Assembly: GCA_040285825.1 (NCBI GenBank) | Contig: JAUPSS010000001.1 | Coordinates: forward strand, 868,001-932,000 | DNA: 64,000 nt | DNA from: Eukaryota sp. TZLM1-RC | Lineage: Eukaryota; Protista; Metamonada: BaSk clade | Direction: 5' to 3' | Part shown: positions 4,037 to 45,552 of the stretch, piece after piece | How the letters are laid out: the number at the start of each line of letters is the position of its first letter | Numbering within the stretch: the stretch's first letter is position 1 | Position numbers and translations under genes: made by a program | Notes under the pieces: model-generated | Database searches by the model: none | Told to the model about the DNA's origin: nothing | The model's input: only the letters and a program-made list of their open reading frames with translations

Positions 4037-7000
4037 ACAATTTTCTTCAAAAAAGATTTCTTGACAAATTCAGGATCTTGGTTGACATTCCAATGCCCAT
4101 ATTTTCTATAACAAGAAGAGTCATCTTTCCTATCACAGTTGTCGCCAAACTTGCACTTATAAGGAATCACTGGTATAGGTTCATGGGAAAAAGTGAAGCG
4201 ATGGAGAGGATCCTTAAGACCTTCACAACTTACCCCATGTTCACATACTTCCAGCTCAACGTGGTCAAATAGTCTGCAGTGTTCCTCATTTTCCACATCT
4301 TTACAAAATCCTGAATATCGACAAATATGTTTAAATCCCCTTAAATGCTTGGCTCCCTCGGAGGTCTTTCCCATATGATCCACATAGTAATACTCGCAGG
4401 TATAAGGATTAGGACATTGAGGTAGTTCAGAGTTTATATTAGCAACATTTTTAGTAATAGAGGAAGATCTTGGTTTTTGAAACGATTTTGTGGATGTAAA
4501 ATGTTGAAAAAATGTTCGATGAGATAGTGAAGCCAACTGGTTACAATTTTTAAAGGGGCAACGTGGAACATGGTGAAATTTTGAAATATGATCTCTTTCA
4601 TCAACACGTTGGCAGGGAAAGAGCAAATCATGACATGGAAGCATAAAATTTCGAGAATTTTGAATTAAATCATATTTAATTAAATCTTGGCATTGTGCTA
4701 GACAATCCCCAAATCCACTAAATATAATTGAATCAAAAAACTTGTGGAAAATGGAAAGTACAAATGATAAAACAGTCATTGCACCAGGAATAGGGTTTCT
4801 GAAAGCTCCACAACCAAGAGGGCAAATCACCAAATGAGTAATTCCGTGTTTAATGGCAGCTAAAAAGACACAAGTCCATCTCTTGTATAGTAATTGTAAA
4901 TCATCAAAATGAGCATAGTCTTCACCAAAGTTTTCGACTTCCTTTTTTTGTGGATTTTGAGGAGCAGCAGTACTTATAATGGTAACTCTTTGTGGTTTTT
5001 CAAGTAATTGATATCCAGTAGCTTCCATTGTTTTGAAAATTTCCACATTTTCGGTAACTACAACATCAATTTTAGCTGTTTTCCATGGATATGCTACCCT
5101 TTGTCCAGAAACGACCTGTCCACCATACTGTTCAGGATCCAAAGCAGCACCTAGAGTTGTTCTTCTGAAAAGTGATTCTTCCTGGGCACTTGCACCCGTG
5201 AGATAACCACCACCAGGATGTTCCTCATTAGCCATGTTGAGGACACCAACACGGTTAGTGGCAGGATCAAGGCCAATCGCACATTCAAGACAGTCTTTTT
5301 CCAAAAACTCGATCGGTTTAACATCATTAGTTGCAACAAAATCAAAATCCTGATTAAAAAAATCGTCAAAAAAATAGACAGAATTACATAGCAAATTACA
5401 ATTCAATCTAATAAAGGATTCACCATTCAGAGCATAACCATTGGCATTCACGACTCTCAAAGTATGAGCTAATATGATGCACAACACAAGCCTATAACAA
5501 TTGTTGAATCTTCGTCTAAGAGAGGGAAGGTCATAGGAATTGATTAGGAAATGGATTAATTGATCATTGTAATTTTCGACTAAATTTCCATAGTAATGCA
5601 GAGCCAAATCAACATGGGCCTTTTGTTCGGCAAAACAAACAGGATACGCAAGAGCAGGATTGAATTCCTCAACCAAAACTAATATAATTTCTCTATTTTT
5701 CCCTTTAATTCTACAATTAAAAATCGTACCTCTTTTTAGAACACATTCATCCTCTGTGCTGACCAGAACAACTCTTCTATCCCCAAACAAAGTGATCTTG
5801 TGCTTTGTGGAAGTGAGGCTCTGGTCAATGACGTGTTTCAGAGTTGAGAAATTTGGACAAGGAATGAAGACTAGTTCGAATAAATAGAATTCATTAAAAG
5901 AAATTCTAAAATTTTGGTTGGAAGTGTCAATTGATTGAATGATCTCTGATTGATCTTCTTTTGAAAAGACCAAATATTCGAACAATGAAATGTCAGCCAA
6001 TATTTGGTCATTTAGATAGATTGTCTGTGAATTCGGTAATAGTTGAGCCAAATTTTCGTCAATAACAGAATGATTAATTGGTGATCCATCTTCGACAACG
6101 ACTGTGATCGACGTCAAGGCTAAAATTTTAGAAGTTTGATCTCTTCCCCTGCTCTTGAGCTCTACTATTTCCTTTTGCTTATCCATTAATTTTTGTTTCA
6201 ATTTTTGAATCAATTGATTGTTTTTTTCATTATTATTGACCGCCAACTGATCACTGTTAGTGGACATTTCTAAAATTTCTGCCTTTAAACCCAAAACTTC
6301 CTTTTCCAAATTTTCAATGATTTCCGATCGGTCGGCTACACAATTTTTCAAAGAGTCAAGGATAGCAACAAATTCTTCATTAATTTCTTTAATTTTCCCA
6401 TATTGCCCTTCTAATTCATCATGAGAGTCAGAAAGATCCTTGAAAGCTGATTCTGATTGGTTCAAGGAAAAAGAAAGTGATTTAATAACTGATGAATAAT
6501 TGGTAGATTTTTCGGAGAGATCACAAAAAAGATCATAAAGCTCATTGAAAGAAGTTGAAAATGTTTTGAATTCTGAACGTTGTGACTGAATGGTTTCCTC
6601 TAAGTGAGTAATTTTTGACTCCAATTCAACAATTAACGTAGACTTAAATTGAATTTCTGTATTCAATTCAGCAATCAAGTCTTGATTATTCTTGATTGAT
6701 TGACAATTTGATTGATTCTCGGTTGATAATTCCGAATTACTGGCTTTAAGAGACATAATCTCTGATTCCAGTGATTCTTTTTCAGACGTTAGAGATTTGA
6801 TTTGAGTAGTTAATTCAGCAATTGATGAATTTAATTCTGCAAATTTAGAACTTTTCATCAATAATTCTTGAATCTTTGAATTAATTTCAGCATCTTTTTC
6901 TTTTAATAATTCAATTTTATCACGGTTTTTCAATCGAATTAGAGAAGCTTTAGCTAGACAGCAAGCAAATCAAGATTTTGTAGAGGAAATCTTGGTTTAA

Positions 7001-8847: not shown

Positions 8848-11800
8848 ATGGTTAAGCCCGTACTTTCGTCACTTCTACTACCTGCTACCTTTTTCGTTTG
8901 TCTTTTATCTAGACAATCTTATTTCTTATTTGCTTTTGTTCCTTCGCTTTTTCTTGCTATTAAGCTTCCGAATCAGAAATAGCCCCCGCTGCTCTCTTTT
9001 GCATTATCCTTTCTTGGTTTAGTCGCTTCTGCAGTAATCATTCCATTTGACCTCCCCCTTCTTCAGTCTTTATATATAGGTACTTGTTCTGATTCACTAT
9101 GTATACCACCATTTGCGTACTATGGTTCACTTGTTTTCTTGTTATTCATCTATCTTCGACTGCAACCTTCTTCATGCACGCTCTCCTCACATGTCCCTCT
9201 CCTGTCCAATGTTTATCTCAAAACCATTCTCATCCTACTTTCCTTCTCTTTCGTCCCCACACCCACCTACTTCGTCTTCTTCACCCTCATATCGCTTGTT
9301 TTGTCATCTCCAACTTCTCCTCTCCTCTCCCACAACCTCTACCATAAGATCTTATCCATTTGTTCATTTTCCCACCTCTACTACATTCTTCTCTCCTCTA
9401 CTCTCTCCCTTCCTTACTTTCATGATCCATCTACTCTTCTTCCACTTCCTGTGTCTTTCTTCTCCACACTACACATTCTTACCCTAATTCTCTCCATTTA
9501 TCTTCACTCATCCCCTTACTTTTTCTCTCCACATCACCGTATTCCCCAAGCAGATAGTGTTGAACCTAGTCTAATCTCTCTTTCTTTTGTTCCTGACACA
9601 ACTGCTTCTATTAGTGTAGCATCTGTAATTTCTTTTTTTCTCATGTGGATTAGTATTAATTGCTACCTTCTTTTACCCTTCACCTTGGCTGATTCCGTTG
9701 CTGATATATGGAATGATTCTGATTATTTTTAAATTAAGAACTTGTGGTTTTAAACGAGGTTATAGAGTTTTATTATTTTCTATTATTTCAATTAATTTAA
9801 CATTTATTTCTTTTTTCTAAACAACCAAGAGCTGTGACGTTACTTTCAGCAGCTTTCTTTCTATTTTTGAACCCTTTTGGTCTATTGGTGACGTTTTCGC
9901 CACGTCAGCATAGGTACTTTTTGAAATTTTTGAGAATTATTTACACAATTGACCACTCTATTATTGTTTTTACTGCTTCTTTATTAATCACCTTAAATTT
10001 ACCTACAGTTCCATTTATTTTACTATTCTTATTATCAGTTCATTATATTCTTCATCCTTTATCATCAAATAAAAAAATTACAAATTTGATGTTATTTATT
10101 TCTTTTGGTTTTGTTTTACTATTTTATTCCACTTTCTCTTCTTTTATTTCCTCAATCTGTGATTCTCAATTCGCAATTGTGTTGGGCGTTTGTAAGACCC
10201 AATCTTATTATTATTCAGTTATTATCTTTATTTTAATTTCTTCTTTATCTCATTTAAATTATTTACTAAGAAGAATAGATGGTGAAAGTAGAACCTCTTT
10301 GTCTTTTCAATCTCCTTTATTCTTAAAATTCAAATCAGTAATTGGAGTTTGCTTTATTAGCATATACTTGTTATTTAGAGTTTGTTTATTGGAAATTGTT
10401 ATATTAGCAATCTTTGTGGTTATTGTTTTACTCCCAATTGTTGGAATTCGAAATTCTTTAATTGACTTTATCGGATTTTCTAGTTTGGTTTTTGGTCATT
10501 GCTAGTTTATTTATAATCCAATACACCCCAGTAATGGATTATTTATCCACACTTCTCCCAGCTCATTATGTAGACGTGATATCACGTTATCATTTTGACC
10601 TTTTATTTGATCGATTTGTTTTTCTTATTTTTCCAGTATTATCTTTTGTTTTTTTTAAGGGAATTGACTTTAATCAGCGCTTCATTTCCCTTTCAAGACC
10701 TTCAATTATCAAAAATTTAGTCGTTTTTCATTCTAGTAATTTCAACATTCCAACCATATATTTTAAATCTAATACCGTTAATAATTTGTATTTTTGATTT
10801 AACTCTAATCAAACACACAAACGGAACTAGTAGGAAGCTGCTTTATCTAATAACCTCAATTTTAACAATAACTCGATTAACAATTACTTATTTATCAATA
10901 GCATTGCCTCAAGATTTTATTAAAAGTCCCATATTTAAAATATTTGCATTACCCTCACTCAACCATTGTGACTCTGTTTTTTGTCTAGAGCATGCTTTAA
11001 TTTTATTACCTTTGGTTATTCAATTAATCATTTCTACCTCCTTCATCAAATCACCTTCCCCATCAATCACGTCGCCTGTGATTGCTTTATTTACATCGCA
11101 ATTCCAACTACTTGGCCCAGCTTTCATGCATACAGTGGCAGTAGTGTTTGCTTGGGTATCTATTCTATCTATAAGAGATCCTTTTTCTATTATTCTAGGA
11201 GCTTCCTGTTTAGGCTTTCTTAGTTCTCATCATTGGAGACATCGGAAAAAACTTGTTTGGTTGGTTCTGTTGGGGTTAGTGTTTGGGGTTGTTTCCAAAA
11301 TTTTGTTGTCTTCTTTATGTGATCTCTATCCTGATCTCCATTCTTCATGGCCAAAATTTTACGAATTTTTCGGAGTGTCTTGCACATCCAACTCTTTCCT
11401 TTTTCACTTCAGTTTCCCCATTTTAGCCATATTTTGCCTCTATAGGTCCATGGCCAATCCCCTTGACTTGAGCTTATACTGCCCCGAAACTGAAGATGAA
11501 GTTTCTCCCATCGCTTTTAAAATTGAAAAGTTTTTGTTACCGCTTTTAAGACCTTGTCTAATTATTTTATTGTTCTTTATCGGTGTTCAACGTGCATCTG
11601 TTCCTGCTTTGCTTTACGTAATTGTAGCACTTTGGTTGGTGTATTCGGACTCTGTTTTTACTGAGCTGAAAAGGGCAAAAACTTTCACGTTTTGTTTGTA
11701 TGTTTTAAACTGCTCTGTTTTGATTTCACAATCAATATTTCAGTTGAGCTTTTTCAGTGAATCTTCTGATCTCTTCTCGATCTCTTCTATTCTAGGTCTA

Positions 11801-14557
11801 GATCAATATCATTCTTACTACTCGGCGCTCAAATTATCAGCTTCACTATTGGATTTCATTGTCCACGGCATCTCTTCTTCTTTGGATGTATTGGTTTACT
11901 CTGCTTCCTTCAAAAGATATCTTTCTTCAGTTAAAACCAGCAGAGATTTGGCCATTCAACGAGTCTTGGATGATGAAAAGTTAAGTAAGCTTAGGCGGGA
12001 AAGGATTTTAAAGCAACAGTTAACAGAGAAGGAAGCTACTGAAAGCAGATTGGAAATGTTAAAGTCCAAAAGACTTGGTAAAAGAGATACATCAGCTCGT
12101 CAAATATTTGAAGAAGAGATCAAAGCACATCAAGACGTTTTAAGTGACTTGTCAAGTAGTGCAGAAGAGATCAAAAAGGATCATGATGACCTGTCAGGTC
12201 AAGAGAAGTCAAGTGACGTTGACGTATCTACTGATCAGAAACTTGATGAAGAGGTCACACCAGATCAAGATGACACGTCTGAGCCTCAACCATCATTTTT
12301 ACTTCGAATGGCAACCAAACTTCAGTCAATCATTTTGAACTTCTTCAATATCAACATTTCTGACCTACCACCACGTCATCAAACGTCACCATTACGTTGG
12401 TTAAAGCACAATATCTATAGATACTCTTCTGTATTGTCTTGCTTGCTTTGCTATCTCGCTGCTTTGTGGTTTCCTTCAATTCCCACCGTGATGATTGCTT
12501 TCACCACGATCACTTTTGGTTTAATGTCCAAATATGGAGGCAAAGCTAGGTTTTGGCAGTTTATTTTGGGAATTTATCTATCTTTATTATTAATCCATTA
12601 CATTTTCACCTTTCCTTTCTTTTGTTTTTGTGTTTCGCCATCAGATTCAATTACCATTTCCTTTGGTAAGTCATGTCTAGATCCCACCAAGTGTCCTGTT
12701 CCAAGGGAGCTTATCGATCCATCAAGTCACCCCTCAGCCCTAAGTTCGCAACTCATTTACCTTGTTGGTATTGCTCCTATTGGTAGCTTCCTCTTCTCCT
12801 ACCCTCCCTTGCTGATTGCTGCATTGGGTATCGTTCTTCATCGTTCTATCTCGTTTAGAATGGGCAGGTGGGGAATTGATGTAGAGGAGAGAGTTGGGGT
12901 TCGTCAAGTTTGGGGTAGGGTCGTGGTCTTCTTCAAGACTCTAATGGAGAAGCGTTTCGACGCTATTGGAGTAGACCTCTACCCATTTATGTTTTTTATT
13001 GATATACTTCAGTTAATTGCGCTTCCATTTGCCTTTTTTAGTAGCTCAACAGCTTCCCAGTCGGTAATCCAATCAGTCCAGCTCAGTTATTTACCTGGTT
13101 TCCTTGCAATTTGGTTGATTGTTCAGTTTCTGTTAATCATTATTGATAGAACTCTTTTCTATTTGAGATTCGCAAGACTAAAAGCTCTGATTCATTTCAT
13201 TTCTAATTTCACTGTGTTAATTGTTTTTTGTTTAATTTTCCCCCGCAGTAATCACGAATTACCAATTAATGCACCTTTTCTCCTAGTCGCGGCATTTCTG
13301 CGGTTTGTGGCTGCCGTGTTGAGCTCTCTACAACTTCGTTTTGGTTTTCCGCCACCTTCTTCCAAAGCCTTTTTGATGAAGTCTTACGGTTCTTTTAATA
13401 ATTATGGATACCAAGCCTTTAGAGTCATTCCTTTTCTTTATGAAATGAAATGTTTGTTGGATTGGTCTTTGACTACTACTGCATTGGAATTTAATTACTG
13501 GATGCGAATAGAAGATATTTATTCTTCACTGTTCTTAATCAAATGCAGAAGGTTATCTACAGCGAAAAGGGGTCGAAATTTTGGTGACCCACAACCAAAA
13601 TTTGACAAATTTTCGCAAGGTTTTCTTTTGTTTTTCGGTCTTACGCTCTTATTATGTTTGCCCTTAATTTTATTTAGTTCTGCTAACCCAGTCTCCAAAC
13701 CAAACCCTATCCAACAGGCCAGTATTGATGTAAGTTTCAATAACTACTTGCCCATTTTCTCTCAGCATGAAGTGCACAAAGTCGATGTTATCCCGGCTAC
13801 ACAATACAATGCAATTGTTAGCCATCACTCCTTGCTCCGTGATTCCAACCGTGCAGATGTAAGAAAGATTACCTTTTTCACTTCATCTGATTCTGTGTGG
13901 ACCATTGCTCCTCCTGCCATGAACGGGCTAGTAGAAGCTTTGGAGGATGGAAGGGGAATAGTATCTGTTACTTTGTCGTTTAACAGACACTATCCAAGCG
14001 ATAGGAGGACAGCAAAGGGATGGTACTCGTTCAATTTAGATCATGAACATTGTTTAGAGTTGGCCAAGTTATTTTCTGGTGATTTAGAAGAAGTAACAAT
14101 ACCTTTACTTCCAAGAGCTGCATTAATTCCTCTGGCCGAATCACCAATCTTTTCTGATCAACGTGAGGATACTCTCATTCAGCGCAGAGAGCGTGACGGA
14201 CAGACTTATTGGTTGATCAAGGATGCTGATTCAAGAGAACCATTCTATATGTATACTTATAGTTTAGAATCGACCGCTGCACTTGGTGCTTATGCCAGCG
14301 GGGGTTTGATTGGATTGTATCTATCAATTGTGATTGGTGTTGGTAGGTTTGTTCGACTTTCATTTTCGGACAGCAAGTCCCAAATTTTTGTTTCAGCTCT
14401 CCCAAATGTGGATAAATTACTTGAAATCTGTGAGGATTTGTTCCTGGCCAGGAGTATCTCAGATTTGTTCCTTGAAGAATCAATTTACAAGGAAATCATT
14501 CAGATATATAGAGATCCAGATACTTTGATTGAATTAACCACACCACCAGTTAAATAG
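8848..14557 (+). CDS. Piezo-type mechanosensitive channel (5' part frameshifted; 10904-14557 open)
   Basis: IPFLYEMKCLLDWSLTTTAL..WMRIEDIY, GLIGLYLSIVIGVGRFVR and LEESIYKEIIQIYRDP are Piezo C-terminal motifs; many TM segments; hydrophobic ORF pieces run upstream to the ATG at 8848. Confidence 0.88.
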
Positions 14558-15711: not shown

Positions 15712-15790
15712 AAATACGCCAACTCTTGATGAATCCTTATAAAGTTTGGACATCATTAAACTCAAGTACTTGGGAACATTGCTGTACGAG
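15712..15790 (-). mobile_element. Short LINE family A 3' end fragment
   Basis: VPKYLSLMMSKLYKDSSRVGV matches 33393-33470. Confidence 0.75.
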
Positions 15791-16109
15791 GCGTGGGAAT
15801 AGAAAGTTGTTCGGGGAGGAGCTGTGGAAAGGCGTGATTGGCCAAAGGTTTGCTTGGAGGGAAGTCTTGGATTGTAATACACGGGTCCAGGTGTATGAAG
15901 TCTTTGCTTAAAGTGTCATTTTCATTATGGGGATTCTCATGTAGCACGATATGTCCAAAATTGAGTAATAAATGGTGGTCTAGATGGGGCACGTATAGAA
16001 TGTAACAAATATATGAAATATGTTGTGTGAAATGGCACCTAGCAACGATGATCAAAGGGAAATAGAAATTATTCATTGGCAATTTTGGAAATTATCTTGT
16101 TTTCTCACA

Positions 16110-18746
16110 ATGCTCTCGTGTCCACATTGTTCAATGGATTTCAATGAAGAGTCTCGTGTGCCACTGGTTGTTTGCAGTCAGCGCCATAGTGTATGCGGTG
16201 TATGCTCTGATGCTGTGGAATCCTGTCCGATCTGCAATGAAGATATCCTGCCGTCACCGGAAGTCAACATCAGTTTGCGCGATATAGCCAAAGCTTCTTG
16301 CAAGGAGGACCTCTGTGTACACATTCCCTCTAACCAGGTCAAACTGTTGCACATGATTGGTCAAGGAGGATATGCCCAGGTGTTTGCTGCTTCTTGGTTT
16401 GATTCAGACGTCGCCGCCAAGACTGTTGCTCTCACAGAAGAAGGTAAGAAACGACTGAGGAAAGAGATTGGTATCATGGCCAAGATTGATCATCCCTTTA
16501 TCCTCCGTGTTTTTGGTCTGGTCAGCTTAATGGACAGACTTGCCATAATTATGGAACTTGCTGAAGGTTCTCTGTCAGTGCCGTCAAGGTTGACTAAACA
16601 AAGTCTCTTGTTTGCCAAGAAGATCTGCCAGGCAGTCCGTTTCCTGCACTCCAAATCACTTGCGCATGGAGATCTCAAGCCCGAAAACATTCTTTTTGTC
16701 AATGGACAAGTGAAATTAGCCGATTTTGGAACATCCAGGACTGTTGCCAAGACTTCCACGGCCACCAATCTATCATGTACAGCTCGGTATGCAGCCTTGG
16801 AACAGTTTGAGAACAAATTGTCTCTTGCCTCAGACATCTATGCAATTGGAATCATCCTTTGTGAGTTACTCTGCAATTATAGACCATTTGTCAATATGGA
16901 TCAGATTGCCATAATGGGAGCTAAGTATTTCAAGACACCATTTGCTTTGGGTGAACACGTTCCCAGTGTGCTCAAAGAATTAATCGCCCAGTGTTGCTCT
17001 TCAGATCCAGCTGCCAGACCAAGTATTGCTCAAGTTCTTCTAGTTTTGGATCAATTGGATGACTTTGCTGAAGAAGGTGATGAAAATCCTATTAATATTA
17101 ACAATGATGTTCAAACGCAACTGCAATCTGCAAACTCCACAATCGAGTCTCTACGAAAGAATGTTGCTGATTTGGAGGCTTCCAATCAACAACTCACCAA
17201 CGATTTGACAGAACGGGATTCCAGAATTGCCTGGTTGGAAGAAGAAAAAGCCGGTATCAATGCCTCCAATCAACACCTCAGTCACTCTTTGGAAGAACGT
17301 GATGCTAGAATTGCCACCATGGAAGAAGCTTTAAATGCCAGCAAGGCCGGTATTGCTGAGAAAGATACAGGAATTGCCAACCTTAGATCTACCATTGATG
17401 AATTGGAAAAGCAAAATACTCTACTCAGTAGAACTAATTCTGACTTAGCAAGCAGAATTGCTGACCTTGAAGCGTTGTTGAGAGAGTGTCATTGTAATCA
17501 ACCTTTGAACAATATCGATGATCATCATCCTCCATCTAAGGAAGAAATTTTGGAAGACATAAAGTCGAATGTAAATTGGAATGGATTGGGAGATGAGGTG
17601 AGGAAGGGTGTTGAGGGTTTGGTTGATGGTTCTATCACTAAATTGCATCTTCGGCACAACAACATTACCTCTGAAGGCGCTAGTGCTCTCGCCCGTGCTC
17701 TGGAGAGCAATTCCACTCTGACTGAATTGTATCTTGGGTTCAACAACATTACCTCTGAAGGCGCTAGTGCTCTCGCCCGTGCTCTGGAGAGCAATTCCAC
17801 TCTGACTGAATTGAATCTTTTGGGCAACAACATTACCTCTGAAGGCGCTAGTGCTCTCGCCCATGCTCTGGAGAGCAATTCCTCTCTGACTACATTGAAT
17901 TTTGGGGGAAACAACATTACCGCTGAAGGCGCTAGTGCTCTCGCCAGTGCTCTGGAGAGCAATTCCACTCTGACTACATTGTATCTTGAGACCAACAAAA
18001 TTACCTCTGAAGGCGTTAGTGCTCTCGCCCGTGCTCTGGAGAGGAATTCCACTCTGACTAAATTGTATCTTGTGAGCAACAACATTACCACTGAAGGCGC
18101 CTGTGCTCTCGCCCGTGCTCTGGAGAGGAATTCCACTCTGACTATATTGCATCTTCAGTCCAACAACATTACCGCTGAAGGCGCTAGTGCTCTCGCCCGT
18201 GCTCTGGAGAGCAATTCCACTCTGACTGAATTGTATCTTCGGTACAACAACATTACCTCTGAAGGCGCTAGTGCTCTCGCCCATGCTCTGGAGAGCAATT
18301 CCACTCTGACTATATTGAATCTTGACTCCAACAACATTACCTCTGAAGGCGCTAGTGCTCTCGCCCGTGCTCTGGAGAGCAATTCCACTCTGACTACATT
18401 GGATCTTGGGTTCAACATCATTACCGATGAAGGCGCTAGTGCTCTCGCCCGTGCTATGGAGAGGAATTCCACTTTGACTACATTGGATCTTCACAACAAC
18501 CAAATCACCGATGAAGGTGCTGGTGCTCTCGCCCGTGCATTGGAGAGCAATTCCACTCTGACTAAATTGGATCTTTGGCGCAACAACATTACCGCTAAAG
18601 GCGCTAGTGCTCTCGCCCGTGCATTGGAGAGCAATTGCACTCTGACTACATTGTATCTTGGGGGCAACAACTTTAGCAATTCAACCAAATCCAAACTTCA
18701 ACAAATAGAATCTAATCGTCCTTCTCTTCAGATTTTCCTTGAATAA
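16110..18746 (+). CDS. RING-like zinc finger + protein kinase + coiled coil + 13 RI-like LRRs
   Basis: CPHC..C..H.VCGVC..CPIC; GQGGYAQV, VAAK, HGDLKPEN, DFG; 28-aa LRRs; likely start MLSCPHC at 16110. Confidence 0.92.
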   Translation: MLSCPHCSMDFNEESRVPLVVCSQRHSVCGVCSDAVESCPICNEDILPSPEVNISLRDIAKASCKEDLCVHIPSNQVKLLHMIGQGGYAQVFAASWFDSDVAAKTVALTEEGKKRLRKEIGIMAKIDHPFILRVFGLVSLMDRLAIIMELAEGSLSVPSRLTKQSLLFAKKICQAVRFLHSKSLAHGDLKPENILFVNGQVKLADFGTSRTVAKTSTATNLSCTARYAALEQFENKLSLASDIYAIGIILCELLCNYRPFVNMDQIAIMGAKYFKTPFALGEHVPSVLKELIAQCCSSDPAARPSIAQVLLVLDQLDDFAEEGDENPININNDVQTQLQSANSTIESLRKNVADLEASNQQLTNDLTERDSRIAWLEEEKAGINASNQHLSHSLEERDARIATMEEALNASKAGIAEKDTGIANLRSTIDELEKQNTLLSRTNSDLASRIADLEALLRECHCNQPLNNIDDHHPPSKEEILEDIKSNVNWNGLGDEVRKGVEGLVDGSITKLHLRHNNITSEGASALARALESNSTLTELYLGFNNITSEGASALARALESNSTLTELNLLGNNITSEGASALAHALESNSSLTTLNFGGNNITAEGASALASALESNSTLTTLYLETNKITSEGVSALARALERNSTLTKLYLVSNNITTEGACALARALERNSTLTILHLQSNNITAEGASALARALESNSTLTELYLRYNNITSEGASALAHALESNSTLTILNLDSNNITSEGASALARALESNSTLTTLDLGFNIITDEGASALARAMERNSTLTTLDLHNNQITDEGAGALARALESNSTLTKLDLWRNNITAKGASALARALESNCTLTTLYLGGNNFSNSTKSKLQQIESNRPSLQIFLE
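17637..18675 (+). repeat. 84-bp tandem LRR array, 13 variable heads
   Basis: Near-identical framework ATTACCTCTGAAGGCGCTAGTGCTCTCGCCCGTGCTCTGGAGAGCAATTCCACTCTGACT between variable xLxLxxN codons. Confidence 0.95.
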
Positions 18747-18853
18747 ACACATTTCAATCACTTTTATTGTCAACACAAAACCAATTACAAAAATCGTCCA
18801 ACACCAACACAAATCAAAACCCAATATAAACTAGAAAAAACAACATTCATAAC

Positions 18854-19045
18854 TGCCAACATCGTAGTCCAGTGGGTTTGCTCTTCGTTCTCTGCTTTGG
18901 CAACAGGGTTCGAATCCTATCTGCTGTACTTCTGGCAAAAGGGGACCCCAAAGTGGGAGCCAGCATTTCCTTTCCCACTTTCCGGGTCTGACTGCATGGT
19001 GCTTGATCAATGAGGGTGATTCTGAAGATTGGGCATTTTAGGTTT
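18854..19045 (+). ncRNA. tRNA-derived Pol III element (SINE-like or small ncRNA)
   Basis: A-box TAGTCCAGTGG at 18865-18875 and B-box GGTTCGAATCC at 18907-18917, 42 nt apart as in tRNA; hairpin AAAGTGGGA..TCCCACTTT; T-runs near 19036-19047. Confidence 0.6.
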
Positions 19046-20547
19046 TTGTGGATCTTGATTTTGCATGTTATTCGCAAAAATTTCCTTTTGTGAGAAATTG
19101 TTACTGTAATTTTTTAACAAATATATATTTATTTTCTGCGAATAATCAAGTCAAATCAAAAGAAACTAAAACACACAAGAAACAAAACTATTTGGGAACA
19201 CTTCTATACAAAGCAAAAATGATACGATTCATCCATAAATTCCCTGCAAAATTGTTACTACTTGAACGACACAAATTACCAAAAATCATTGATAAAATTC
19301 AAGGCGGATTGTCCAATGTTGCCAAAAATCGAAAAGACAAAAGGAACAAACGAAAACTTTGAGTAAAGATTCTTATTTAAATCATTTAATATCGCAGTAT
19401 ATTTACCTCTTTTTCGGTTTTCACTAAGTAAAACATCATCACAATAAAAAAAAGCAAAGGTATCTCTTGATCATCAGAATCGAGACTAAAACAATTATTG
19501 TTTCCAGACGCATGTGTGGAAATTTTTTTAAACTCTTGAGGAACTTCGTAATTGACTTGGCCTTTTTTTGTGAATCTTGTAAAGCTATAGATTGTTCAAA
19601 ATATTATACGTGTTACAGCACAGGTAACTCCTCTATCTTCTATCTTCCTTTTCAATTTGCTTCTGGAAATTTACTAATAATTTAAAAGAAGGAATATGGG
19701 ATATCACACGGTTATGGAAATTTGTTTGCTTAAAGCTAAAACAGTATTGTCTTACAACTCCAAAAATACTTGAAAATACTAACGGAAACTGTTGCAGAGT
19801 TTATACCGGTTTAAAATTCGAATCAGATTTTTTGATCACTTAGAATTGTTGCAAAACCTGTATTGTTCTTCGATCGTGAACAAGACAAATTGTTAAATAA
19901 CATGCTCTTAATTGAACGTATTTTATTGTTCTAGTGTTCTAGTGTTTTATTCTAAGTGTTTCAAGAATATTCAGTTAACCAGAGAACGATCTTTATGAAG
20001 AGCTATCAAAATTGCCACTTCATAATCCTTTATAGACTGGTTTTACTTATAAATTTTGTTTTGTCAAATTCGATTTAAAATAGGAATTTATGCAAAATTC
20101 ATCACTATTTCACAATGTTTGCAAAATTCCGATCTCCTTTGATGAAAAGAGTAAAATTAAAGAGTACAACGTACCCTTATCGTAGGTAGGATGTGTTGCG
20201 CATGTTAAGTATTATTATACAATTTTTATGGCTCACAGCAAACGCTTATCAAAGAAGATTGTAATTTCATATTATCTGGTGTCAATAAGATTATCCGTTG
20301 TGTCCTATCTTTTTATGCTTTGCTATTCATCCTTTAATGAATGAATTAATACAAGAATTTCAAGCTATTCAAATTACTGCTTATATAAATGAAATTTTAA
20401 TTATTGGTCCAATTGCTTCATTGAGAAAAATTGTTAGAATTGTTCAACAACTATTATCAAATTAGTCTTTCCTTAAATATTTCTAAATGCTTGTTGATTG
20501 GTAAAGAGATTGCTGAACTGGTTATTGATGATCAAATTGTTCCTGAT

Positions 20548-23460: not shown

Positions 23461-23937
23461 ATTACCCATAAAGGAGAATTCCATTTTGCATCCCGCTCAT
23501 CATATCACAAACAAGACATTACCCCATTGGTTGCCCTAACTTTTGAGAGACAAACAAAGGCATTGGGTAGAGCATATTTGGAAGATGAAACTTATTCATA
23601 AATGTTTATTTCATTAATAAATTGAATTTCTATAATTGAACATCATACAATGCTTCACTGAACTTGAATTATGTCTTTACACCCAAGATCACCATTATAA
23701 ATACAACTGTCTAATATCAATTTTTCCTGTCAAAGTAGTTATACCAACATCCACACAGCAGAGATAACTCTATGATGGCGATTTGATCAATTCCTAGAGT
23801 ATGTGTACCTCAAAATATCAAAACCCATTAGAATGGTTTATGCCATTATCCTATATATATTAATGCGAGTGTGAGTGGGTTTTATATTCAATTAGTCTTT
23901 TCATAAAATAAATAACAGTGGTTTGATTGAATTCCTC

Positions 23938-24672
23938 ATGAAACTAACTGTTATAGGCCACTGGGCAGGATATCCTAAAGCTAATGACGCTACCTCTGGT
24001 TATTTGCTCCAGCACGATGGTTTCAATGTTCTTATTGATTGTGGTAGTGGTGTATTGTCCAACATGTTGCACTTCGTTTCTTACACCGAACTGCATGCAG
24101 TTGTCATCTCCCACTACCACCATGATCATATTGCTGACGTAGGTCCACTACAATACGCTAGGCTAGTGGAAACACAGCTAGGCAAGGTGAATTCTCCACT
24201 CAAAGTATATGGCCCATCGTATGATCAGGATACACTGTCAAAGTTAAAGAAACCTCCATTTGTTGACACTGTTCCATATGACCCGCAAAGCCGAAAAAAA
24301 ATAGGTCCGTTTGAGTTGGAATTTCATGAAAATATCCACTCAATTAAATCATTTGCCATTAAGGCTACTTGTGGATCCAAATCAGTAGCTTATTCAGGAG
24401 ACACTGCCTATCATGAGACATTGGCAGAGTTTGTGAGTGATGTAGATTTGTTCATTTGCGAGGCGAGCTTCTATCCTTGGCAAGATGCAGTGCCTTATGG
24501 ACACTTAACAAGTACAGAAGCAGCGAGAATTGCTCAAAAAGCGTCAGTAAATCATCTTTTACTTACACATTTACCTCACTTCGGAAATGTAAACGAGTTG
24601 CTTGAGGATGCTAAGAAACATTTCGAACAGAGAACGAGTCTGGCATTCAAAGGGTGGTGTTGTGAGATATAG
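23938..24672 (+). CDS. Metallo-beta-lactamase-fold hydrolase (RNase Z/YhfI-like)
   Basis: MKLTVIG.WAGYP, LIDCGSG, SHYHHDH, YSGDT, EAS, GHLT, LTH; intronless and bacterial-like. Confidence 0.9.
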   Translation: MKLTVIGHWAGYPKANDATSGYLLQHDGFNVLIDCGSGVLSNMLHFVSYTELHAVVISHYHHDHIADVGPLQYARLVETQLGKVNSPLKVYGPSYDQDTLSKLKKPPFVDTVPYDPQSRKKIGPFELEFHENIHSIKSFAIKATCGSKSVAYSGDTAYHETLAEFVSDVDLFICEASFYPWQDAVPYGHLTSTEAARIAQKASVNHLLLTHLPHFGNVNELLEDAKKHFEQRTSLAFKGWCCEI

Positions 24673-24892: not shown

Positions 24893-26834
24893 TTTTTGAT
24901 GTGCTTCTTCATGATTTTCCTGAACTTTCTGCATATTTTTATTTATTTTATGGAAAAAAATCAGACTTAATTTTTGACTCCTTTACCCTTGAATCTTCTT
25001 CTGGTGTGAAACAAGGTGATCCTCTTGGCCCTTTGCTGTTTTGTTTGGCTATTCATAATATTATTAAAATGACACAACAAGATTTCCCTGATTTGCGTAT
25101 TGTTGCCTATATGGATGACATTTCTATTATTGGTTCTTTTGAAAGCATTTCTAGGGTTTCTGAAGACATTGCGGCGAAATACAAAGAAATTGGTTTAGCT
25201 TTGAACCCATCTAAATGTCTCTTGATTGGTAGAGAAAAACAATCTTTGATGATTGGTGGAGCTCAGATTCCTTTTATCAATTATGACCAACAAGCTTTTA
25301 AGTTTCTTGGATGTTGGCTTGGCAATTTGGATGAAATTTATTCCCAGTTAAACAATTTATTGGAGAAGTTTGACAAGGATCTTAGTTTAATTGCTGAATG
25401 TGACATTGAGAAACACATCAAATTTTTATTTTAAAAATTTGTTATTCTGGAAAAATTCACTCATATTTTAAGGTCAACTCCCCTTCGGTATCTCTCAATT
25501 TTTGCAGATCTTTTAACAAACTTCGAGTCAAATTTTTTTCTTCTTTATTAGAAGTAAATGAATCTTTAATTCGAAGTCATGTATTTTGTTCAGCAGATTT
25601 GGGTGGAATTGGATTCACCAAATCTTCGATTCTGTGTAAAGCAGCATTTTTGGGAGGTGGTAAAAATTTTGTTTTTGAATTTTTCCAAAGGTTCCCTTTT
25701 GATGTTCATCTGATCAATGGTGAATCAAATTTTTACTTGAATCAACTGCAATTTGAATTAGAAAATTTGCCTAGTGATATCTGGATTCAGTGTTTTCCTC
25801 AAAACGTTCAAGAAATTCCCACTCGATCACTTCCAAATTTACGTTTTTGCTTGAAAAAGCTTCAGCACCATCTGGTTAAATTATATGAAGGCTTGGATTA
25901 TGAAGTAAGACTTGGCTTGGCCAAAACTAGAAATCCCGCTTTCGGTAATTTTTTAAAGGATATTCGTGATAGTTCTGCTGCTGCTTTAGTAACTCAAGTT
26001 CCCTCTGTTTATGGACTTTTGCTAAAAGACAATGAATGGCTTTTAAACATGCGTTTTCGTTGTTTTCTGTGGCCAAACAATTTGCCCAATCATTTAACTT
26101 GTAAATGTGGTAAACCTCTTTTGTTTACTCATCTTTTGAACTGCAAACATTTCATTACATTTAGAAGCAAAGTGCATAATAACGTCAGGGACCAAATTTA
26201 TGTAATGTGCAAATCATATCGTGTAGATTCCTTTTTAGAACCGCTGTTATCAAAATTAATTCTTGATGATCCCAATATTGATAGTACGTGTTACAACAGA
26301 GCTTCTATGGGTTTGACTAGAGGTGATCTAGTTGTTCCCGGTTTAAATGGTAGTTTTACTATTTTGGACGCCATGTCTATTGACCCTTGTAATTCCTCTA
26401 ACGAACATTTCATTAACTCGGATGTAAATAATCCTCTTCTTGCAGGCGAAAAATATAAAATTGCTAAATATGCGAAACCCATTTCCTCGGTTAATGAAAA
26501 TTCTCATGCCCAATATAATTTATGTCCATTTGTTTTTTCTTTGCTTGGATCTCTAGGTAAGGCTGCTATGGCTTTCCTTGAGGATTTTGTTGTAGTTGTA
26601 AAGGAAAGAACTGGAAGAATTTTCAATCGTGTTTACTGGCAAAACAGGATTGTATTTTTCTATTTTTAAGGGAATGGTAACACTAATTTCTGATTCACTA
26701 TCTTCTTTTGGGAAATTTTCTGAATCTTTAGCGATTAATTGTTTTGATGTAGGGGAGGCAGGTTTTGAGGATGTGGAGTTTTAATTGTGTATTTCATATT
26801 TGTTGTTGAATAAAAATATTCTTTTTTAAAAAAA
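24893..26834 (+). mobile_element. 5'-truncated RLE (CRE-like) LINE family B with poly(A) and a 10-bp TSD
   Basis: GVKQGDPLGP, AYMDD, CKC..HLLNC, RGDLVVP..D..DP..KYK..KY; TSD AAGTTTGAGA at 24883-24892 and 26835-26844. Confidence 0.92.
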
Positions 26835-29800
26835 AAGTTTGAGACAACTTTTGACAATTTTCTTCAAAAAAGATTTCTTGACAAATTCAGGATCTTGGTT
26901 GACATTCCAATGCCCGTACTTTCTATAACAAGAAGGGTCATCTTTCCTATCACACTTGTCGCCAAACTTGCACTTATAAGGAATCACTGGTATAGGTTCA
27001 TGGGAAAAAGTGAAGCGATGAAGAGGATCCTTAAGACTTTCGCAACTTACCCCATGTTCACATACTTCCAGCTCAACGTGGTCAAATAGTCTGCAGTGTT
27101 CCTCGTTTTCCACATCTTTACAAAATCCTGAATATCGACAAATATGTTTAAACCCCCTTAAATGCTTCGCTCCCTCGGAGGTCTTTCCCATATGATCCAC
27201 ATAGTAATACTCGCAGGTATAAGGATTAGGACATTGAGGTAGTCCTGAGTTTATATTAGCAACATTTTTAGTAATAGAGGAAGATCTTGGTTTTTGAAAC
27301 GATTTTGTGGATGTATAATGTTGAAAAAATGTTCGATGGGATAGTGAAGCCAACTGGTTACAATTTTTAAAGGGACAACGTGGGACATGGTGAAATTTTG
27401 TAATATGATCTCTTTCTTCAACACGTTGGCAGGGAAAGAGCAAATCTTGACATGGAAGCATAAAATTTCGAGAATTTTGAATTAAATCGTATTTAATTAA
27501 ATCTTGGCATTGTGCTAGACAATCCCCAAATTCACTAAATATAATTGAATCAAAAAACTTGTGAAAAATGGAAAGTACAAATGATAAAACAGTCATTGCA
27601 CCGGGAATAGGGTTTCTGAAAGCTCCACAACCAAGAGGGCAAATCACCAAATGAGTATTTCCGTGTTTAATGGCAGCTAAAAAGACACAAGTCCATCTCT
27701 TGTATAGTAATAGTAAATCATCAAAATGAGCATAGTCTTCACCAAAGTTTTCAACTTCCATTTTTTGTGGATTTTGAGGAGCAGCAGTACTTATAATGGT
27801 AACTCTTTGTGGTTTTTCAAGCAATTGACATCCAGTAGCTTCCGTTGTTTTGAAAATTTCCACATTTTCGGTAACTACAACATCAATTTTAGCTGTTTTC
27901 CATGGATATGCTACCCTTTGGCCAGAAACTACATGTCCACCATACTGTTCAGGATCCAAAGCAGCACCTAGAGTTGTTCTTCTGAAAAGTGATTCTTCCT
28001 GAGCACTGGCACCCGTGAGATAACCACCACCAGGATGTTCCTCATTAGCCATGTTGAGGACACCAACACGGTTAGTGGTAGGATCAAGGCCAATCGCACA
28101 TTCAAGACAGTCTTTTTCCAAAAACTCGATCGGTTTAACCTCATTAGTTGCAAAAAAATCAAAATCATGATTAAAATAATCGTCAAAAAAATAGACAGAA
28201 TTACATAGCAAATTACAATTCAATCTAGTAAAGGATTCACCATTCAGAGCATAACCATTGGCATTCACGACTCTCAAGGTATGAGCCATTATGATGCACA
28301 ACACAAGCCTATAACAATTGTTAAATCTTCGTCTAAGAGAGGGAAGGTCATAGGAATTGATTAGGAAATGGATTAATTGATCATTGTAATTTTCGACTAA
28401 ATTTCCATAGTAATGCAGAGCCAAATCAACATGGGCCTTTTCTTCGGCAAAACAAACAGGATAAGCAAGAGCAGGATTCAATTCCTCAACTAAAACTAAT
28501 GTAATTTATCTATTTTTCCCTTTAATTAAAAATCGTACCTCTTTTTAGAACACATTCATCCTCTGTGCTGACCAGAACAACTCTTCTATCCCCAAACAAA
28601 GTGATCTTGTGCTTTGTGGAAGTGAGGCTCTGGTCAATGACGTGTTTCAGAGTTGAGAAATTTGGACAAGGAATGAAGACTAGTTCGAATAAATAGAATT
28701 CATTAAAAGAAATTCTAAAATTTTGGTTGGAAGTGTCAATTGATTGAATGATCTCTCATTGATCTTCTTTTGAAAAAGATCAAATATTCGAACAATGAAA
28801 TGTCAGCCAATATTTGGTCATTTAGATAGATTGTCTGTGAATTCGGTAATAGTTGAGCCAAATTTTCGTCAATAACAGAATGATTAATTGGTGATCCATC
28901 TTCGACAACGACTGTGATCGACGTCAAGGCTAAAATTTTAGAAGTTTGATCTCTTCCCCTGCTCTTGAGCTCTACTGTTTCCTTTTGCTTATCCATTAAT
29001 TTTTGTTTCAATTTTTGAATCAATTGATTGTTTTTTTCATTATTATTGACCGCCAACTGATCACTGTTAGTGGACATTTCTGAAATTTCTGCCTTTAAAC
29101 CCAAAACTTCCTTTTCCAAATTTTCAATGATTTCCGATCGGTCGGCTACACAATTTTTCAAAGAGTCAAGGATAGCAACAAATTCTTCATTAATTTCTTT
29201 AATTTTCCCATATTGCCCTTCTAATTCATCATGAGAGTCAGAAAGATCCTTGAAAGCTGATTCTGATTGGTTCAAGGAAACAGAAAGTGATTTAATAACT
29301 GATGAATAATTGGTAGATTTTTCGGAGAGATCACATAAAAAGATCATAAAGCTCATTGAAAGTAGTTGAAAATGTTTTGAATTCTGAACGTTGTGACTGA
29401 ATGGTTTCCTCTAACTGAGTAATTTTTGACTCCAATTCAACAATTAACGTAGACTTAAATTGAATTTCTGTAATCAATTCAGCAATCAAGTCTTGACTAT
29501 TCTTGATTGATTGACAATTTGATTGATTCTCGGTTGATAATTCCGAATTACTGGCTTTAAGTGACATAATCTCTGATTCCAGTGATTCTTTTTCAGACGT
29601 TAGAGATTTGATTTGAGTAGTTAATTCAGCAATTGATGAATTTAATTCTGCAAATTTAGAACTTTTCATCAATAATTCTTGATTCTTTGAATTAATTTCA
29701 GCATCTTTTTCTTTTAATAATTCAATTTTTTTAAAAAAATTAATTTTATTCTAAACCTATAAATCAACATCTAAAAAATCCATCTCTCCCAAAACAAAAA

Positions 29801-30575
29801 CACTAGATGCAACTCTCTCATAGTGAGATCCAAGAGAAAGCAAAGCATCAAAAACCATCTTCAACATCCCCTTAAAAATAGAAAACACAATTCTATTTTG
29901 CCAAAACAATCTGTTGAAATTTCTGCCAGTTCTTCTCTTTACAATCATTTCAAAATCATCCAAAAAACGTAAAGCAGTTGGTGCAAGTGAACCAAAAGGG
30001 GAAAATACAAATGGATAAAAATTGTATTTTGCATGCTGTAGACTGGCCAATTTGGACAAAGGTTCATTGTATTTTTTGAATTTAAAATTTTCAGCATTTG
30101 AAAGGGGATTATGAATTTCAGAATTGACAAGCCTTTCATTTGAGGCATTACAAGGATCAACAGACATTACATCCAATAAAATAAAGCTTCCATCTAATCC
30201 AGGTAATCTGACATCACCTCTATTATTCTCATGAAAATCATTTTCAGCATCAAACAGATTTGACAACAGAGGTTCCAAGAAGGATTCAATTCTATGAGAT
30301 TTACACATACAATATAACTGGTCTCTTACAGCATCATGAACCTTACTTCTAAAAGTAATAAAATGTTTACAATTTAACAAATGAGTAGTTGTAATTTCTC
30401 GAGAACATTTACAAATTAAATTATGAGGTAAATTATCAGGCCAGATAAAGGAACGAAATCTCATATTCAGAGTCCAAGCAGAATCGGGGGTCTTAATTCA
30501 ATTTTATCACCATTATCTTTTTCATTTTTCTTAATTTCTTTTTTTAATTCACTATTCAACAGACCCAATTCATCT
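26826..30575 (-). pseudogene. PARG-PBZ gene copy 2 (frameshifted, LINE-interrupted, 5' deleted)
   Basis: Highly similar to 4030-7142; frameshifts near 28500, 28775 and 29340; fused at ~30575 to the 3' end of a kinase-LRR gene. Confidence 0.85.
29730..30493 (-). mobile_element. 5'-truncated RLE LINE family D with a 12-bp TSD
   Basis: CKC..HLLNC, HDAVRD, RGDVRLP..DVMSVDP..KFKKY; TSD TAATTCAATTTT at 29718-29729 and 30494-30505. Confidence 0.85.
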
Positions 30576-30740
30576 AAATCCAAACTTCGACAAATAGCAT
30601 CTAATCGTCCTTCTCTTAGCATTGTCGTTAAATAAACACATTTCAATCACTTTTATTATCAACACAAAACCAACTATAAAATCGTCCAACATCAATACAA
30701 ATCAAAACCCAATATAAACTAGAAAAATCAACATCCTCGT

Positions 30741-30935
30741 TTGCCAACATCGTAGTCCGGTGGGTTTGCTCTTCGTTCTCTGCTTTGGCAACAGGGTTCG
30801 AATCCCATCTGCTGCACTTCTGGCAAAAGGGGACCCCAAAGTGGGAGCCAGCATTTCCTTTCCCACTTTCCGGGTCTGACTGCATGGTGCTTGATCAATG
30901 AGGGTGATTCTGAAGATTGGGCATTTTAGGTTTTT
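30741..30935 (+). ncRNA. tRNA-derived Pol III element, copy 2
   Basis: TAGTCCGGTGG A-box and GGGTTCGAATCCC T-loop/B-box. Confidence 0.6.
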
Positions 30936-31049
30936 GTGGATCTTGATTTTGCATGTTATTCGCAAAAATTTCCTTTTGTGAGAAATTGTTACTGTGATTT
31001 TAGCAACAATATTGATTTTCTACTGAAAATCAAATCAAATCAAAAAATC

Positions 31050-31832
31050 TAAAGCACATAAGAAACAAAATTATTTGGGAACACTTCTGTACAAAGCAAA
31101 AATGATACGATTCTTCCATAAATTCTCTGCAAAATTTTTACCACTTGAACGACATCAATTACCAAATTCATTGATGAAATTCAAGGCGGATTGTCCTATG
31201 TTGCCAAAAATCGAAAAGGCAAAAGGAACAAACGAAAACTTCGAATAAAGGTTCTTATTTAAATCATTTAATATCTCAGTGTATTTATCTCTCTTACGAT
31301 CTTCAGCCTTGTTTAAATGGCCATTAGTACTAAGTAAAACATCATCGCGATAAAACAAAAGCAAAGGGATAAACTGTAGTGAAATCAACAACAACTTGAG
31401 AGGAATCCACAAAATTTCCATCTTTTATGCATAACTTTTAATCCATTAAAGAATAAAATAATCAAATACACAACTAAAGCTCCATATCCTCAAAGTGTGC
31501 CTCCTCTACCACAAAACAATCAATTACTAAACATTCAGAATATTTCCCATAAAAAGTACAGAATGAATCAGAAATTAATTCACCATTCCCTTAAAAATAA
31601 ATAATACAATCCGGTTTTGCCAGTAAACACACTTGAAAATTCTTCCAGTTCTTTCCTTTTCAACTACATCAAAATTCTTGACGGAGACCATTGCAGCCTT
31701 ATCCAAAGACCCAAGCAAGGAAAAAACAAATGAACATAAAATGTATTGGGCATGTGAATATTCATTGACAAAAGAAGTATGTTTCATGAATTAAAAAATT
31801 TTGTATTTTTCGCCAGCAAGAAGAAAACTATT
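31050..31832 (-). mobile_element. LINE A and LINE B-like 3' fragments
   Basis: Duplicate of 1790-2580. Confidence 0.8.
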
Positions 31833-33225: not shown

Positions 33226-33233
33226 TTTTGGTG

Positions 33234-33248: not shown

Positions 33249-33249
33249 T

Positions 33250-37854: not shown

Positions 37855-37941
37855 CATCTTACTTGATTTATTTTACAAAGAAGTTGAAATAATTTCAAAA
37901 AGATTTAATAAAAAGAAAATAATACTGTAAATAAAAATTCA

Positions 37942-43526: not shown

Positions 43527-45552
43527 TTGCAAGGAGGACCTCTGTGTACACATTCCCTCTAACCAAGTCAAACTTTTGCACATGATTGGACAAGGAGGAT
43601 ATGCCCAGGTGTTTACTGCTTCTTGGTTTGATTCAGACGTCGCCGCCAAGACTGTTGCTCTCACAGAAGAAGGTAAGAAACGACTGAGGAAAGAGATTGG
43701 TATTATGGCCAAGATTGATCATTCCTTTATCCTCCGTGTTTTTGGTCTGGTCAGCTTAATGGACAGACTCGCCATAATTATGGAACTTGCTGAAGGTTCT
43801 CTGCCAGTGCCGTCAAGATTGACTAAACAAAGTCTCTTGTTTGCAAAAAGGATCTGCCAGGCAGTCCGTTTCCTGCACTCCAAATCACTTGCACATGGAG
43901 ATCTCAAGCCCGAAAACATTCTTTTTGTGAATGGGCAAATCAAATTAGCCGATTTTGGAACATCCAGGACTGTTGCCAAGACTTCCACGGCTACCAATCT
44001 ATCATGTACGGCACGGTATGCAGCCTTGGAACAGTTTGAGAACAAATTGTCTCTTGCCTCAGACATCTATGCAATTGGAATCATCCTTTGTGAGTTACTC
44101 TGTAATTATAGGCCATTTGTCAATATGGATCAGCTTGCCATAATGGGAGCTAAGTATTTCAAGACACCATTTGCTTTGGGTGAACACGTTCCCAGTGTGC
44201 TCAAAGAATTAATCGCCCAATGTTGCTCTTCAGATCCAGCTGCCAGACCAAGTATTGCTCAAGTTCTACTAGTTTTGGATCAATTGGATGACTTTGCTGA
44301 AGAAGGTGATGAAAATCCTATTAGTATTAACAATGATGTTCAAACGCAACTGCAATCTGCCAACTTCACAATCGAGTCTCTACGAAAGAATGTTACTGAT
44401 TTGGAGGCTTCCAATCAACAACTCACCAACGATTTGACAGAACGGGATTCCAGAATTGCCTGGTTGGAAGAAGAAAAAGCCGGTATCAATGCCTCCAATC
44501 AACACCTCAGTCACTCTTTGGAAGAACGTGATGCTAGAATTGCCACCATGGAAGAAGCTTTAAATGCCAGCAAGGCCGGTATTGCTGAGAAAGATACAGG
44601 AATTGCCAACCTTAGATCTACCATTGATGAATTGGAAAAGCAAAATACTCTACTCAGTAGAACTAATTCTGACTTAGCAAGCAGAATTGCTGACCTTGAA
44701 GCGTTGTTGAGAGAGTGTCATTGTAATCAACCTTTGAACAATATCGATGATCATCATCCTCCATCTAAGGAAGAAATTTTGGAAGACATAAAGTCGAATG
44801 TAAATTGGAATGGATTGGGAGATGAGGTGAGGAAGGGTGTTGAGGGTTTGGTTGATGGTTCTATCACTGAATTGTATCTTGGGTTCAACAACATTACCTC
44901 TGAAGGCGCTAGTGCTCTCGCGCGTGCTCTGGAGAGCAATTCCACTCTGACTGAATTGAATCTTGGGTTCAACAACATTACCTCTGAAGGCGCTAGTGCT
45001 CTCGCCCGTGCTCTGGAGAGCAATTCCACTCTGACTATATTGAATCTTGACTCCAACAAAATTACCTCTGAAGGCGCTAGTGCTCTCGCCCGTGCTCTGG
45101 AGAGCAATTCCACTCTGACTGAATTGAATCTTTTGGGCAACAACATTACCTCTGAAGGCGCTAGTGCTCTCGCCCATGCTCTGGAGAGCAATTCCTCTCT
45201 GACTACATTGAATTTTGGGGGAAACAACATTACCTCTGAAGGCGCTAGTTCTCTCGCCCATGCTCTGGAGAGCAATTCCACTCTGACTAAATTGTATCTT
45301 CAGTACAACAAAATTACCTCTGAAGGCGCTAGTGCTCTCGCCCGTGCTCTGGAGAGCAATTCCACTCTGACTAGATTGTATCTTAACTCCAACAAAATTA
45401 CCTCTGAAGGCGCTAGTGCTCTCGCCCGTGCTCTGGAGAGCAATTCCTCTCTGACTGAATTGTATCTTTGGAACAACAACATCAGCAATTCAACCAAATC
45501 CAAACTTCGACAAATAGCATCTAATCGTCCTTCTCTTCACATTGTCGTTTAA
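43527..45552 (+). pseudogene. Kinase-coiled coil-LRR paralog (8 LRR heads) lacking the RING exon/5' end
   Basis: Near-identical to the first paralog from CKEDL (16299) onward; upstream sequence is retrotransposon, so the ORF-track start at 43303 is a read-through. Confidence 0.85.
44866..45485 (+). repeat. 84-bp tandem LRR array, 8 variable heads
   Basis: Same framework as 17637-18675 with a different module order. Confidence 0.95.

Follow-up and report, generated by a model that had tools for sequence, protein, structure and literature searches.

Gene A and its family

We analysed a stretch of 64,000 nucleotides (the window) from Eukaryota sp. TZLM1-RC, i.e., Skoliomonas litria, a free-living, anaerobic, bacterivorous metamonad from Lake Manyara (PMC11603281), a soda lake. 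The window contains a gene with a leucine-rich repeat (LRR) array, which we call gene A, as well as a paralogue (gene B) and a relic, laid out as follows:

16110..18746, + strand: gene A, an intronless open reading frame (from the ORF list) of 878 aa with a RING-like finger, a kinase, a coiled coil, an LRR array and a cap
16119..16238, + strand: RING-like zinc finger with C3HC4 spacing, aa 4-43 (zf-RING_5, E=0.0036)
16344..17039, + strand: Ser/Thr kinase, non-RD (HGD replaces HRD), aa 79-310 (Pkinase, 1.9e-44)
17097..17489, + strand: probable coiled coil (from sub-threshold coiled-coil Pfam matches, aa 310-459)
17538..17627, + strand: predicted helical N-cap preceding the LRR units (helices at 10-20 and 27-39 in the model)
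17637..18675, + strand: 84-bp RI-type LRR units, 12 full and 1 terminal, with variable codons 2, 4, 6, 7 (and 12)
18477..19115, + strand: 3' segment (units 11-13, cap, flank), nearest to RCC1-LRR genes on other contigs
18676..19423, + strand: cap and 3' flank, common to all family genes wholly or partly
30566..31370, + strand: relic consisting only of the C-terminal cap and 3' flank
43527..45552, + strand: gene B, whose RING was lost to an upstream gag-like element
44866-45482: gene B array, 7 full units and 1 terminal unit

The product of gene A is identical to an 878-aa NCBI protein encoded on a 4.04-Mb contig. Its kinase has intact catalytic motifs, namely GQGGY (the Gly loop), VAAK (the beta-3 Lys), HGDLKPEN and DFG, and by these motifs it is predicted to be an active non-RD protein kinase. 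No transmembrane-like segment was found in the protein outside the kinase core, within which its most hydrophobic stretch lies. The kinase is N-terminal, and the intracellular RING-kinase architecture previously proposed for this gene is supported, with a zf-RING_5 match that is weak and falls below the Pfam cut-off. A plant-type LRR receptor-like kinase was ruled out by the N-terminal kinase and the lack of a membrane span. Gene A does combine C-terminal superstructure-forming repeats with an N-terminal signalling domain, as NLR-type proteins do; a domain search of the 878-aa protein and its paralogues detected neither NACHT nor NB-ARC, and an NLR (STAND) receptor was ruled out for want of this central NTPase.

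All close relatives of gene A came from Eukaryota sp. TZLM1-RC, on the one 4.04-Mb contig. The 84-bp unit was found behind three heads, i.e., the RING-kinase of gene A (RING-kinase A), a distinct RING-kinase B and RCC1, and a single contig carries at least 11 RING-kinase-LRR genes of the family, at least five RCC1-LRR genes lying elsewhere. We read eight genes with the RING-kinase A head, two of the three known with kinase B and two of the five known with RCC1 (on other contigs), and extracted 134 units from these 12 genes. The relic in the window is not a donor, because it holds no variable codons. A metagenome scan for relatives returned only unrelated kinases (25-26%), the genome paper mentions neither leucine-rich repeats nor kinases (PMC11316075), and a literature search turned up no account of a protist family of this kind. 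The family is best explained as young and clustered, with one pool of 84-bp LRR units in common.

Three public runs of one DNA sample, and none of RNA, were found; they consist of assembled contigs, which covered gene A, the array being spanned by no single piece. One contig differed from the kinase part of gene A at 24 sites, each found in some paralogue and never all in one, and is either a further paralogue or a mosaic. In run X2, the contig ends at two loose ends (window 17924 and 17956) encode a related LRR unit whose framework is different, which shows that the sample contains one more LRR subfamily.

Neighbouring genes

A Piezo channel gene is duplicated with the cassette (10904-14557 and 59293-62945; also in loci L003 and L004), its second copy in the window being split by a frameshift. 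Beside family genes lies a microbial-type PARG with a coiled coil and a zinc-finger-like tail (4030-6933, 26826-29729 and 56587-58871 (-)); PARGs are often associated with host-virus conflict. A bacterial-type metallo-beta-lactamase-fold gene (23923-24672 and 53576-54325; also in L002, L004 and L006) is named Anti-Pycsar Apyc1-like in neighbouring loci. Two open reading frames on the minus strand had no Pfam match: one of 401 aa (51618-52823) and a gag-like one of 657 aa (41418-43391), which has a CCHC-like motif and an RG-rich end followed by a protease-like stretch, and which adjoins and truncates gene B at ~43527. The 3' end of a non-LTR retroelement, with a T-rich tail, recurs on the plus strand at 1616 and 21575 and stands seven times in tandem in locus L008 (13711-19581). 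A virus-like block of low GC (32512-38816) encodes a deoxynucleoside kinase (dNK, 1e-13), a RING/IBR protein and a very divergent RPB2-like fragment; a retroelement interrupts it, and nothing ties it to the gene A protein.

An RI-like repeat array

The gene A array is a tandem repeat of period 84 (12.4 copies, zero indels) whose neighbouring units are 88% identical in DNA, and Pfam recognised at least 10 LRR_6 repeats in it (LRR_6, 1e-80). An AlphaFold model was made without an alignment (pLDDT 85.6). The modelled LRR domain resembles ribonuclease inhibitor (RI; TM 0.83 to 2bex), which was also the top PDB match. With units numbered as 28 codons from the T of TxLxLxxN, codons 2-6 lie on a beta strand and codons 12-24 on a helix in the model. 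By domain search, PDB match and model, the array belongs to the RI-like (NLRC3-type) LRRs, having a 28-residue beta-alpha repeat, the LxxLxLxxN motif and a horseshoe fold. The modelled strand includes variable codons 2, 4 and 6 and is followed directly by codon 7; that the x-positions of LxxLxLxxN point to the concave binding surface is established knowledge, stated too in PMC3341825.

Exchange of units within and between genes

The original prediction of concerted evolution is supported by framework silent diversity, four-gamete failures, shared units and the chimeric make-up of gene A. Silent sites of the framework are less diverse across genes and contigs (0.065) than those in the unique 5' parts of the kinase-A paralogues (0.098), and 80 of 210 framework site pairs failed the four-gamete test. 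The variable codons are nearly unlinked, forming 95 distinct four-residue codes among the 134 units. The number of units per gene ranges from 6 to 25, identical units stand next to one another in runs, and genes A and B have units in common at shifted positions, one of them identical. Through unequal crossing-over and gene conversion, units are copied and exchanged both inside one gene and from gene to gene, and the framework with its silent bases is therefore nearly uniform.

By sequence comparison, gene A is a chimera whose 3' end carries the trace of an ectopic exchange. Its cap shows 1/78 differences to the RCC1-LRR gene P0124 (locus L012, on another contig) versus 8-12/78 to kinase paralogues, its flank 5/246 to the same RCC1-LRR locus versus 13-25/246, and its unit 11 is two differences away from an RCC1-gene unit (L009) versus nine from any kinase-gene unit; the left edge of the chimeric segment is uncertain, lying at unit 10 or 11. 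Moreover, a kinase-A start fragment sits directly upstream of a kinase-B gene, a trace of N-terminal swapping.

As far as read, the family genes have in common the cap and, completely or partly, a 3' flank of ~700 bp with a non-LTR retroelement at its end, so that homology is available for ectopic exchange; in gene A the flank from 18985 on is the 3' end of such an element, on the minus strand. Neither poly(A) nor a flush target-site duplication was found at the cassette edges in six loci, and a retrotransposed origin of the cassette was not confirmed. At L012:13876-14251, window-type left (15788-15913) and right (18934-19115) cassette flanks are joined without a gene, resembling an empty site or a deletion product. 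A tRNA-like head with motifs resembling A and B boxes (18854-18930), located in the 3' flank that the genes have in common, was rejected, having no ARAGORN or Rfam match.

Probable selection at the binding face

Diversifying selection at the x-positions of LxxLxLxxN, as originally predicted, is supported. Counted pairwise on non-independent, recombining units from one strain, rather than with a formal site model, pN at codons 2, 4, 6 and 7 was 0.505 versus a framework pS of 0.065, a ratio of 7.8 (gene bootstrap 5.7-12.1; 134 units, 12 genes), and array A alone gave 7.9. Minimum-event counts on the same units gave a ratio of 4.7-7.2 at the variable codons, which is a lower bound because variable sites saturate. 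At these exposed positions, four or five in number, amino-acid change is ~5-8 times faster than silent change, and codons 2, 4, 6 and 7 hold 7, 12, 16 and 15 kinds of amino acid, respectively. Variation was not spread evenly with a ratio near or below 1; instead, nonsilent events cluster in 4 of the 28 codons (P=2e-15). The picture of four variable codons in a near-identical framework was thus confirmed for codons 2, 4, 6 and 7, but codon 12 is a fifth variable site (S/D/A, pN 0.44) and codon 9 varies weakly (pN 0.19).

Codon pattern of the array

Within the gene A array, codon 6 ends in G in 11 of the 13 units and codon 7 in C in 12 of 13, exactly as claimed, and codon 2 ends in A in all 13. 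Codon 4, said to be always NAT, is so in 13/13 units of gene A, but this is broken in ten paralogue units; the paralogues have ggt, cgt, agt, gtt, att, act, caa and gaa. From the amino acids and local codon usage, 9.2, 3.1, 2.7 and 5.9 such third bases of 13 are expected at codons 4, 6, 7 and 2, respectively (P = 0.011, <1e-5, <1e-5 and 3e-5 for the excess observed), and the pattern is therefore not due to chance.

Third bases remain as in the recent ancestor unit unless a new amino acid requires another. Departures were forced by the amino acid in 17/19 cases at codon 6, 13/16 at codon 7 (30/35 for the two together) and 2/2 at codon 4, and in pairs with the same amino acid, third bases differed in a fraction of 0.034 at variable codons versus 0.039 in the framework. 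On a simple reading, the codon restriction reflects a recent common ancestor unit, little time for silent change and selection retaining amino-acid change. In other organisms, D, N, Y or H occupies the codon 4 site in 80% of repeats (n=1206). Galdieria arrays end in T at codon 4 and in A at codon 2 (37/38 each), and a Linnemannia array has NAC at codon 4 in 12 of 13 units; in both, codons 6 and 7 end in mixed bases, as expected of older arrays.

Interpretation and alternatives

Taken together, these results are best read as those of a cytosolic sensor family that evolves in concert and is under diversifying selection, a reading to which we assign a probability of roughly 0.78. Diversifying selection would retain ordinary point mutations because the residues affected would line the concave binding face. 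The horseshoe would bind a changing target, conceivably a viral, bacterial, selfish-element or conspecific non-self protein, the coiled coil would relay binding, and the kinase and RING would be switched. Most non-RD kinases have been linked to innate immunity (PMC3085482), and the earlier label of an immune-type receptor is one that we infer for gene A.

We consider it unlikely that the selection is real and the role is not defence, i.e., that the arrays serve as targeting modules for endogenous partners or in prey sensing, like the Giardia Nek-ankyrin proteins. Giardia, a relative, has 133 Neks that join a kinase to variable ankyrin arrays, some with a coiled coil and RING and thought to act in localisation (PMC3218828), and Skoliomonas feeds on bacteria (PMC11603281). 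However, the Giardia repeats are described as divergent, not as homogenised with few hypervariable sites, and continuous diversification fits a moving target; the link of non-RD kinases to innate immunity argues in the same direction, although kinase-B members are RD kinases.

Relaxed constraint, in which exposed residues drift in a selfishly amplifying, partly dead family, is improbable. The region is transposon-rich, full of nested duplications and retroelements, gene B is truncated and a cap-only relic is present. Framework pN/pS is ~1 (0.062/0.065), and the framework itself is therefore weakly constrained. Yet a 5-8 fold excess of amino-acid over silent change is beyond the reach of drift, the nonsilent events are concentrated in few codons, and the units contain no stop codon (0 in 134). 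Moreover, pN/pS among paralogues is 0.18 for the kinase and 0.17 for the RING, both of which are under purifying selection.

The original prediction had offered targeted mutagenesis as an alternative source of the variation, which our data do not support. A base-precise diversifier that writes the variable codons (by DGR-like adenine mutagenesis, a deaminase or templated donor patching) is very improbable and, in the sampled genes, largely refuted. In its favour, AAT, AAG and AAC templates in a DGR would yield NNT, NNG and NNC codons, 12/16 NNG and 13/16 NNC codons are present, and reverse transcriptases (RTs) are frequent nearby. With all ambiguous paths read as silent, silent events per site reached 3.6 at variable codons versus 1.06 (P=0.005), a mild excess that points weakly toward a mutator; the other path rules gave 2.0 vs 1.0 (P=0.14) and 0.8 vs 0.8 (P=0.61).

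Against a diversifier, silent diversity beside the variable codons is not elevated, amounting to 0.034 in flanking codons 1, 3, 5 and 8 versus 0.071 far away, and the mutational spectrum is framework-like (transitions/transversions 23/33 at variable codons vs 31/35). Silent-capable adenines are fixed (codon 13 is A in 122/122 units, codon 2 in 129/134) and silent-capable T sites are fixed to the same degree, which rules out DGR-type change whichever strand is considered. The codons tac, cac, aaa, gaa and tgg occur, which A-to-N change cannot yield from a fixed G or C; on invariant silent-capable adenines and changing G and C third bases, a DGR was ruled out. TCG is missing at codon 6, though Ser is the residue most often found at this position in other organisms (39%), and every allele is linked through single steps.

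Nor was a source of donor sequence found in the ~270 kb read (the window and ten loci): there was no non-coding template repeat with a dedicated RT, and the orphan donor arrays that had been proposed were absent, all 134 units lying in frame inside complete arrays. The neighbouring RTs resemble those of non-LTR retrotransposons by their ORF motifs, and a short-protein search of limited length range had no LRR-only Skoliomonas protein at E<=1e-60 among the matches listed. Diversity-generating retroelements (DGRs) produce codon-patterned variation, and lamprey VLRs carry their diversity on the concave LRR face; the S. litria family differs from them in lacking, within this ~270 kb, flanking donor LRR cassettes, an incomplete germline gene, a template repeat and adenine-specific change, and VLR-type assembly was ruled out on the first two counts.

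Finally, an assembly artefact of collapsed or mis-polished repeats is barely credible, since polishing errors would ignore codon position, frame and structure across 12 genes and the public-run contigs cover the whole gene with paralogue-type variants, even if unit order may be wrong in places in an assembly of R9.4 Nanopore reads (41x) with Illumina polishing (PMC11316075).

Comparison with known systems

Two analogies had been drawn, with fungal NLR repeats and with VLRs; the latter fails on donors, while the former is supported. The Podospora het-d/het-e/het-r WD40 repeats and the TPR/ANK NLRs likewise have near-identical repeats that evolve in concert, both inside a gene and among genes, four codons of the binding face under diversifying selection, variation in repeat number and swapped N-terminal domains (PMC4986451, PMC12222747). 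Our family falls within the het-e regime of more than ~80% DNA repeat identity with exchange within and between genes (88%, shared units, a chimera) and of a few binding-face codons with dN > dS (ratio 4.7-7.8, by counting methods), while the amino-acid repeat identity of array A, at 76%, is below the 85% cut of PMC4986451. Unlike the fungal proteins, the gene A family has RI-type LRRs, of which the fungal NLR survey reports none, lacks NACHT/NB-ARC, bears a RING-kinase or RCC1 N-terminus, belongs to a unicellular metamonad and is known from sequence alone.

The ROCO LRR-GTPases/LRR-kinases of Ectocarpus are similarly clustered, with fast birth and death and selected concave-face residues, but each of their LRRs forms an exon of its own, spare exons lie in their introns, and they have Roc-COR (PMC3341825); the S. 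litria array has no introns, no spare units in the ~270 kb read and no Roc-COR. Tetrahymena, also unicellular, has young LRR genes next to a non-LTR retrotransposon, with ectopic recombination proposed, but its arrays are of 90-bp exons and introns and of another LRR class (PMC6564038). The Giardia Nek-ankyrin and Protein 21.1 families, too, have expanded in a metamonad and combine kinase, coiled coil, RING and variable repeats, differing in ankyrin repeats that are divergent, many dead kinases and another domain order (PMC3218828).

The NLRC3-like arrays of corals, Mortierellaceae and Galdieria also belong to the 28-residue class and are homogeneous, with the same variable positions and the third base of codons 2 and 4 frozen, yet have other N-terminal domains and mixed third bases at codons 6 and 7. 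In the red alga Galdieria partita, three adjoining genes (L011, 4785-17417) contain LRR arrays whose 84-bp units are homogeneous and vary at the positions seen in S. litria, the same regime as in the S. litria family. In the sister species TZLM3-RCL, protein P0009 (RCL1_008928) has the same RING non-RD kinase head followed by TPR repeats (aa 386-816), at least 11 units of 34 aa that are 75% identical with a few variable columns at the protein level. This kinase-TPR protein is a candidate parallel sensor, and it suggests that the RING-kinase head is reused with differing variable repeat domains.

Discussion

The codon pattern that prompted this analysis reflects no new mutational mechanism, but ordinary inheritance and selection. 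The evolutionary signature is one already known from sensors; what is new is the lineage and the architecture, with neither a NOD nor a membrane span. It is a long shot that the reshuffled pool of LRR modules, under three signalling heads, might furnish new specificities within a clonal population, possibly in a directed way; if true, such within-clone shuffling would constitute an anticipatory recognition repertoire in a protist, and over evolutionary time the shuffling has taken place. How single-celled eukaryotes recognise viruses, intracellular bacteria and non-self is largely open, and this family offers a concrete candidate in a cultured organism.
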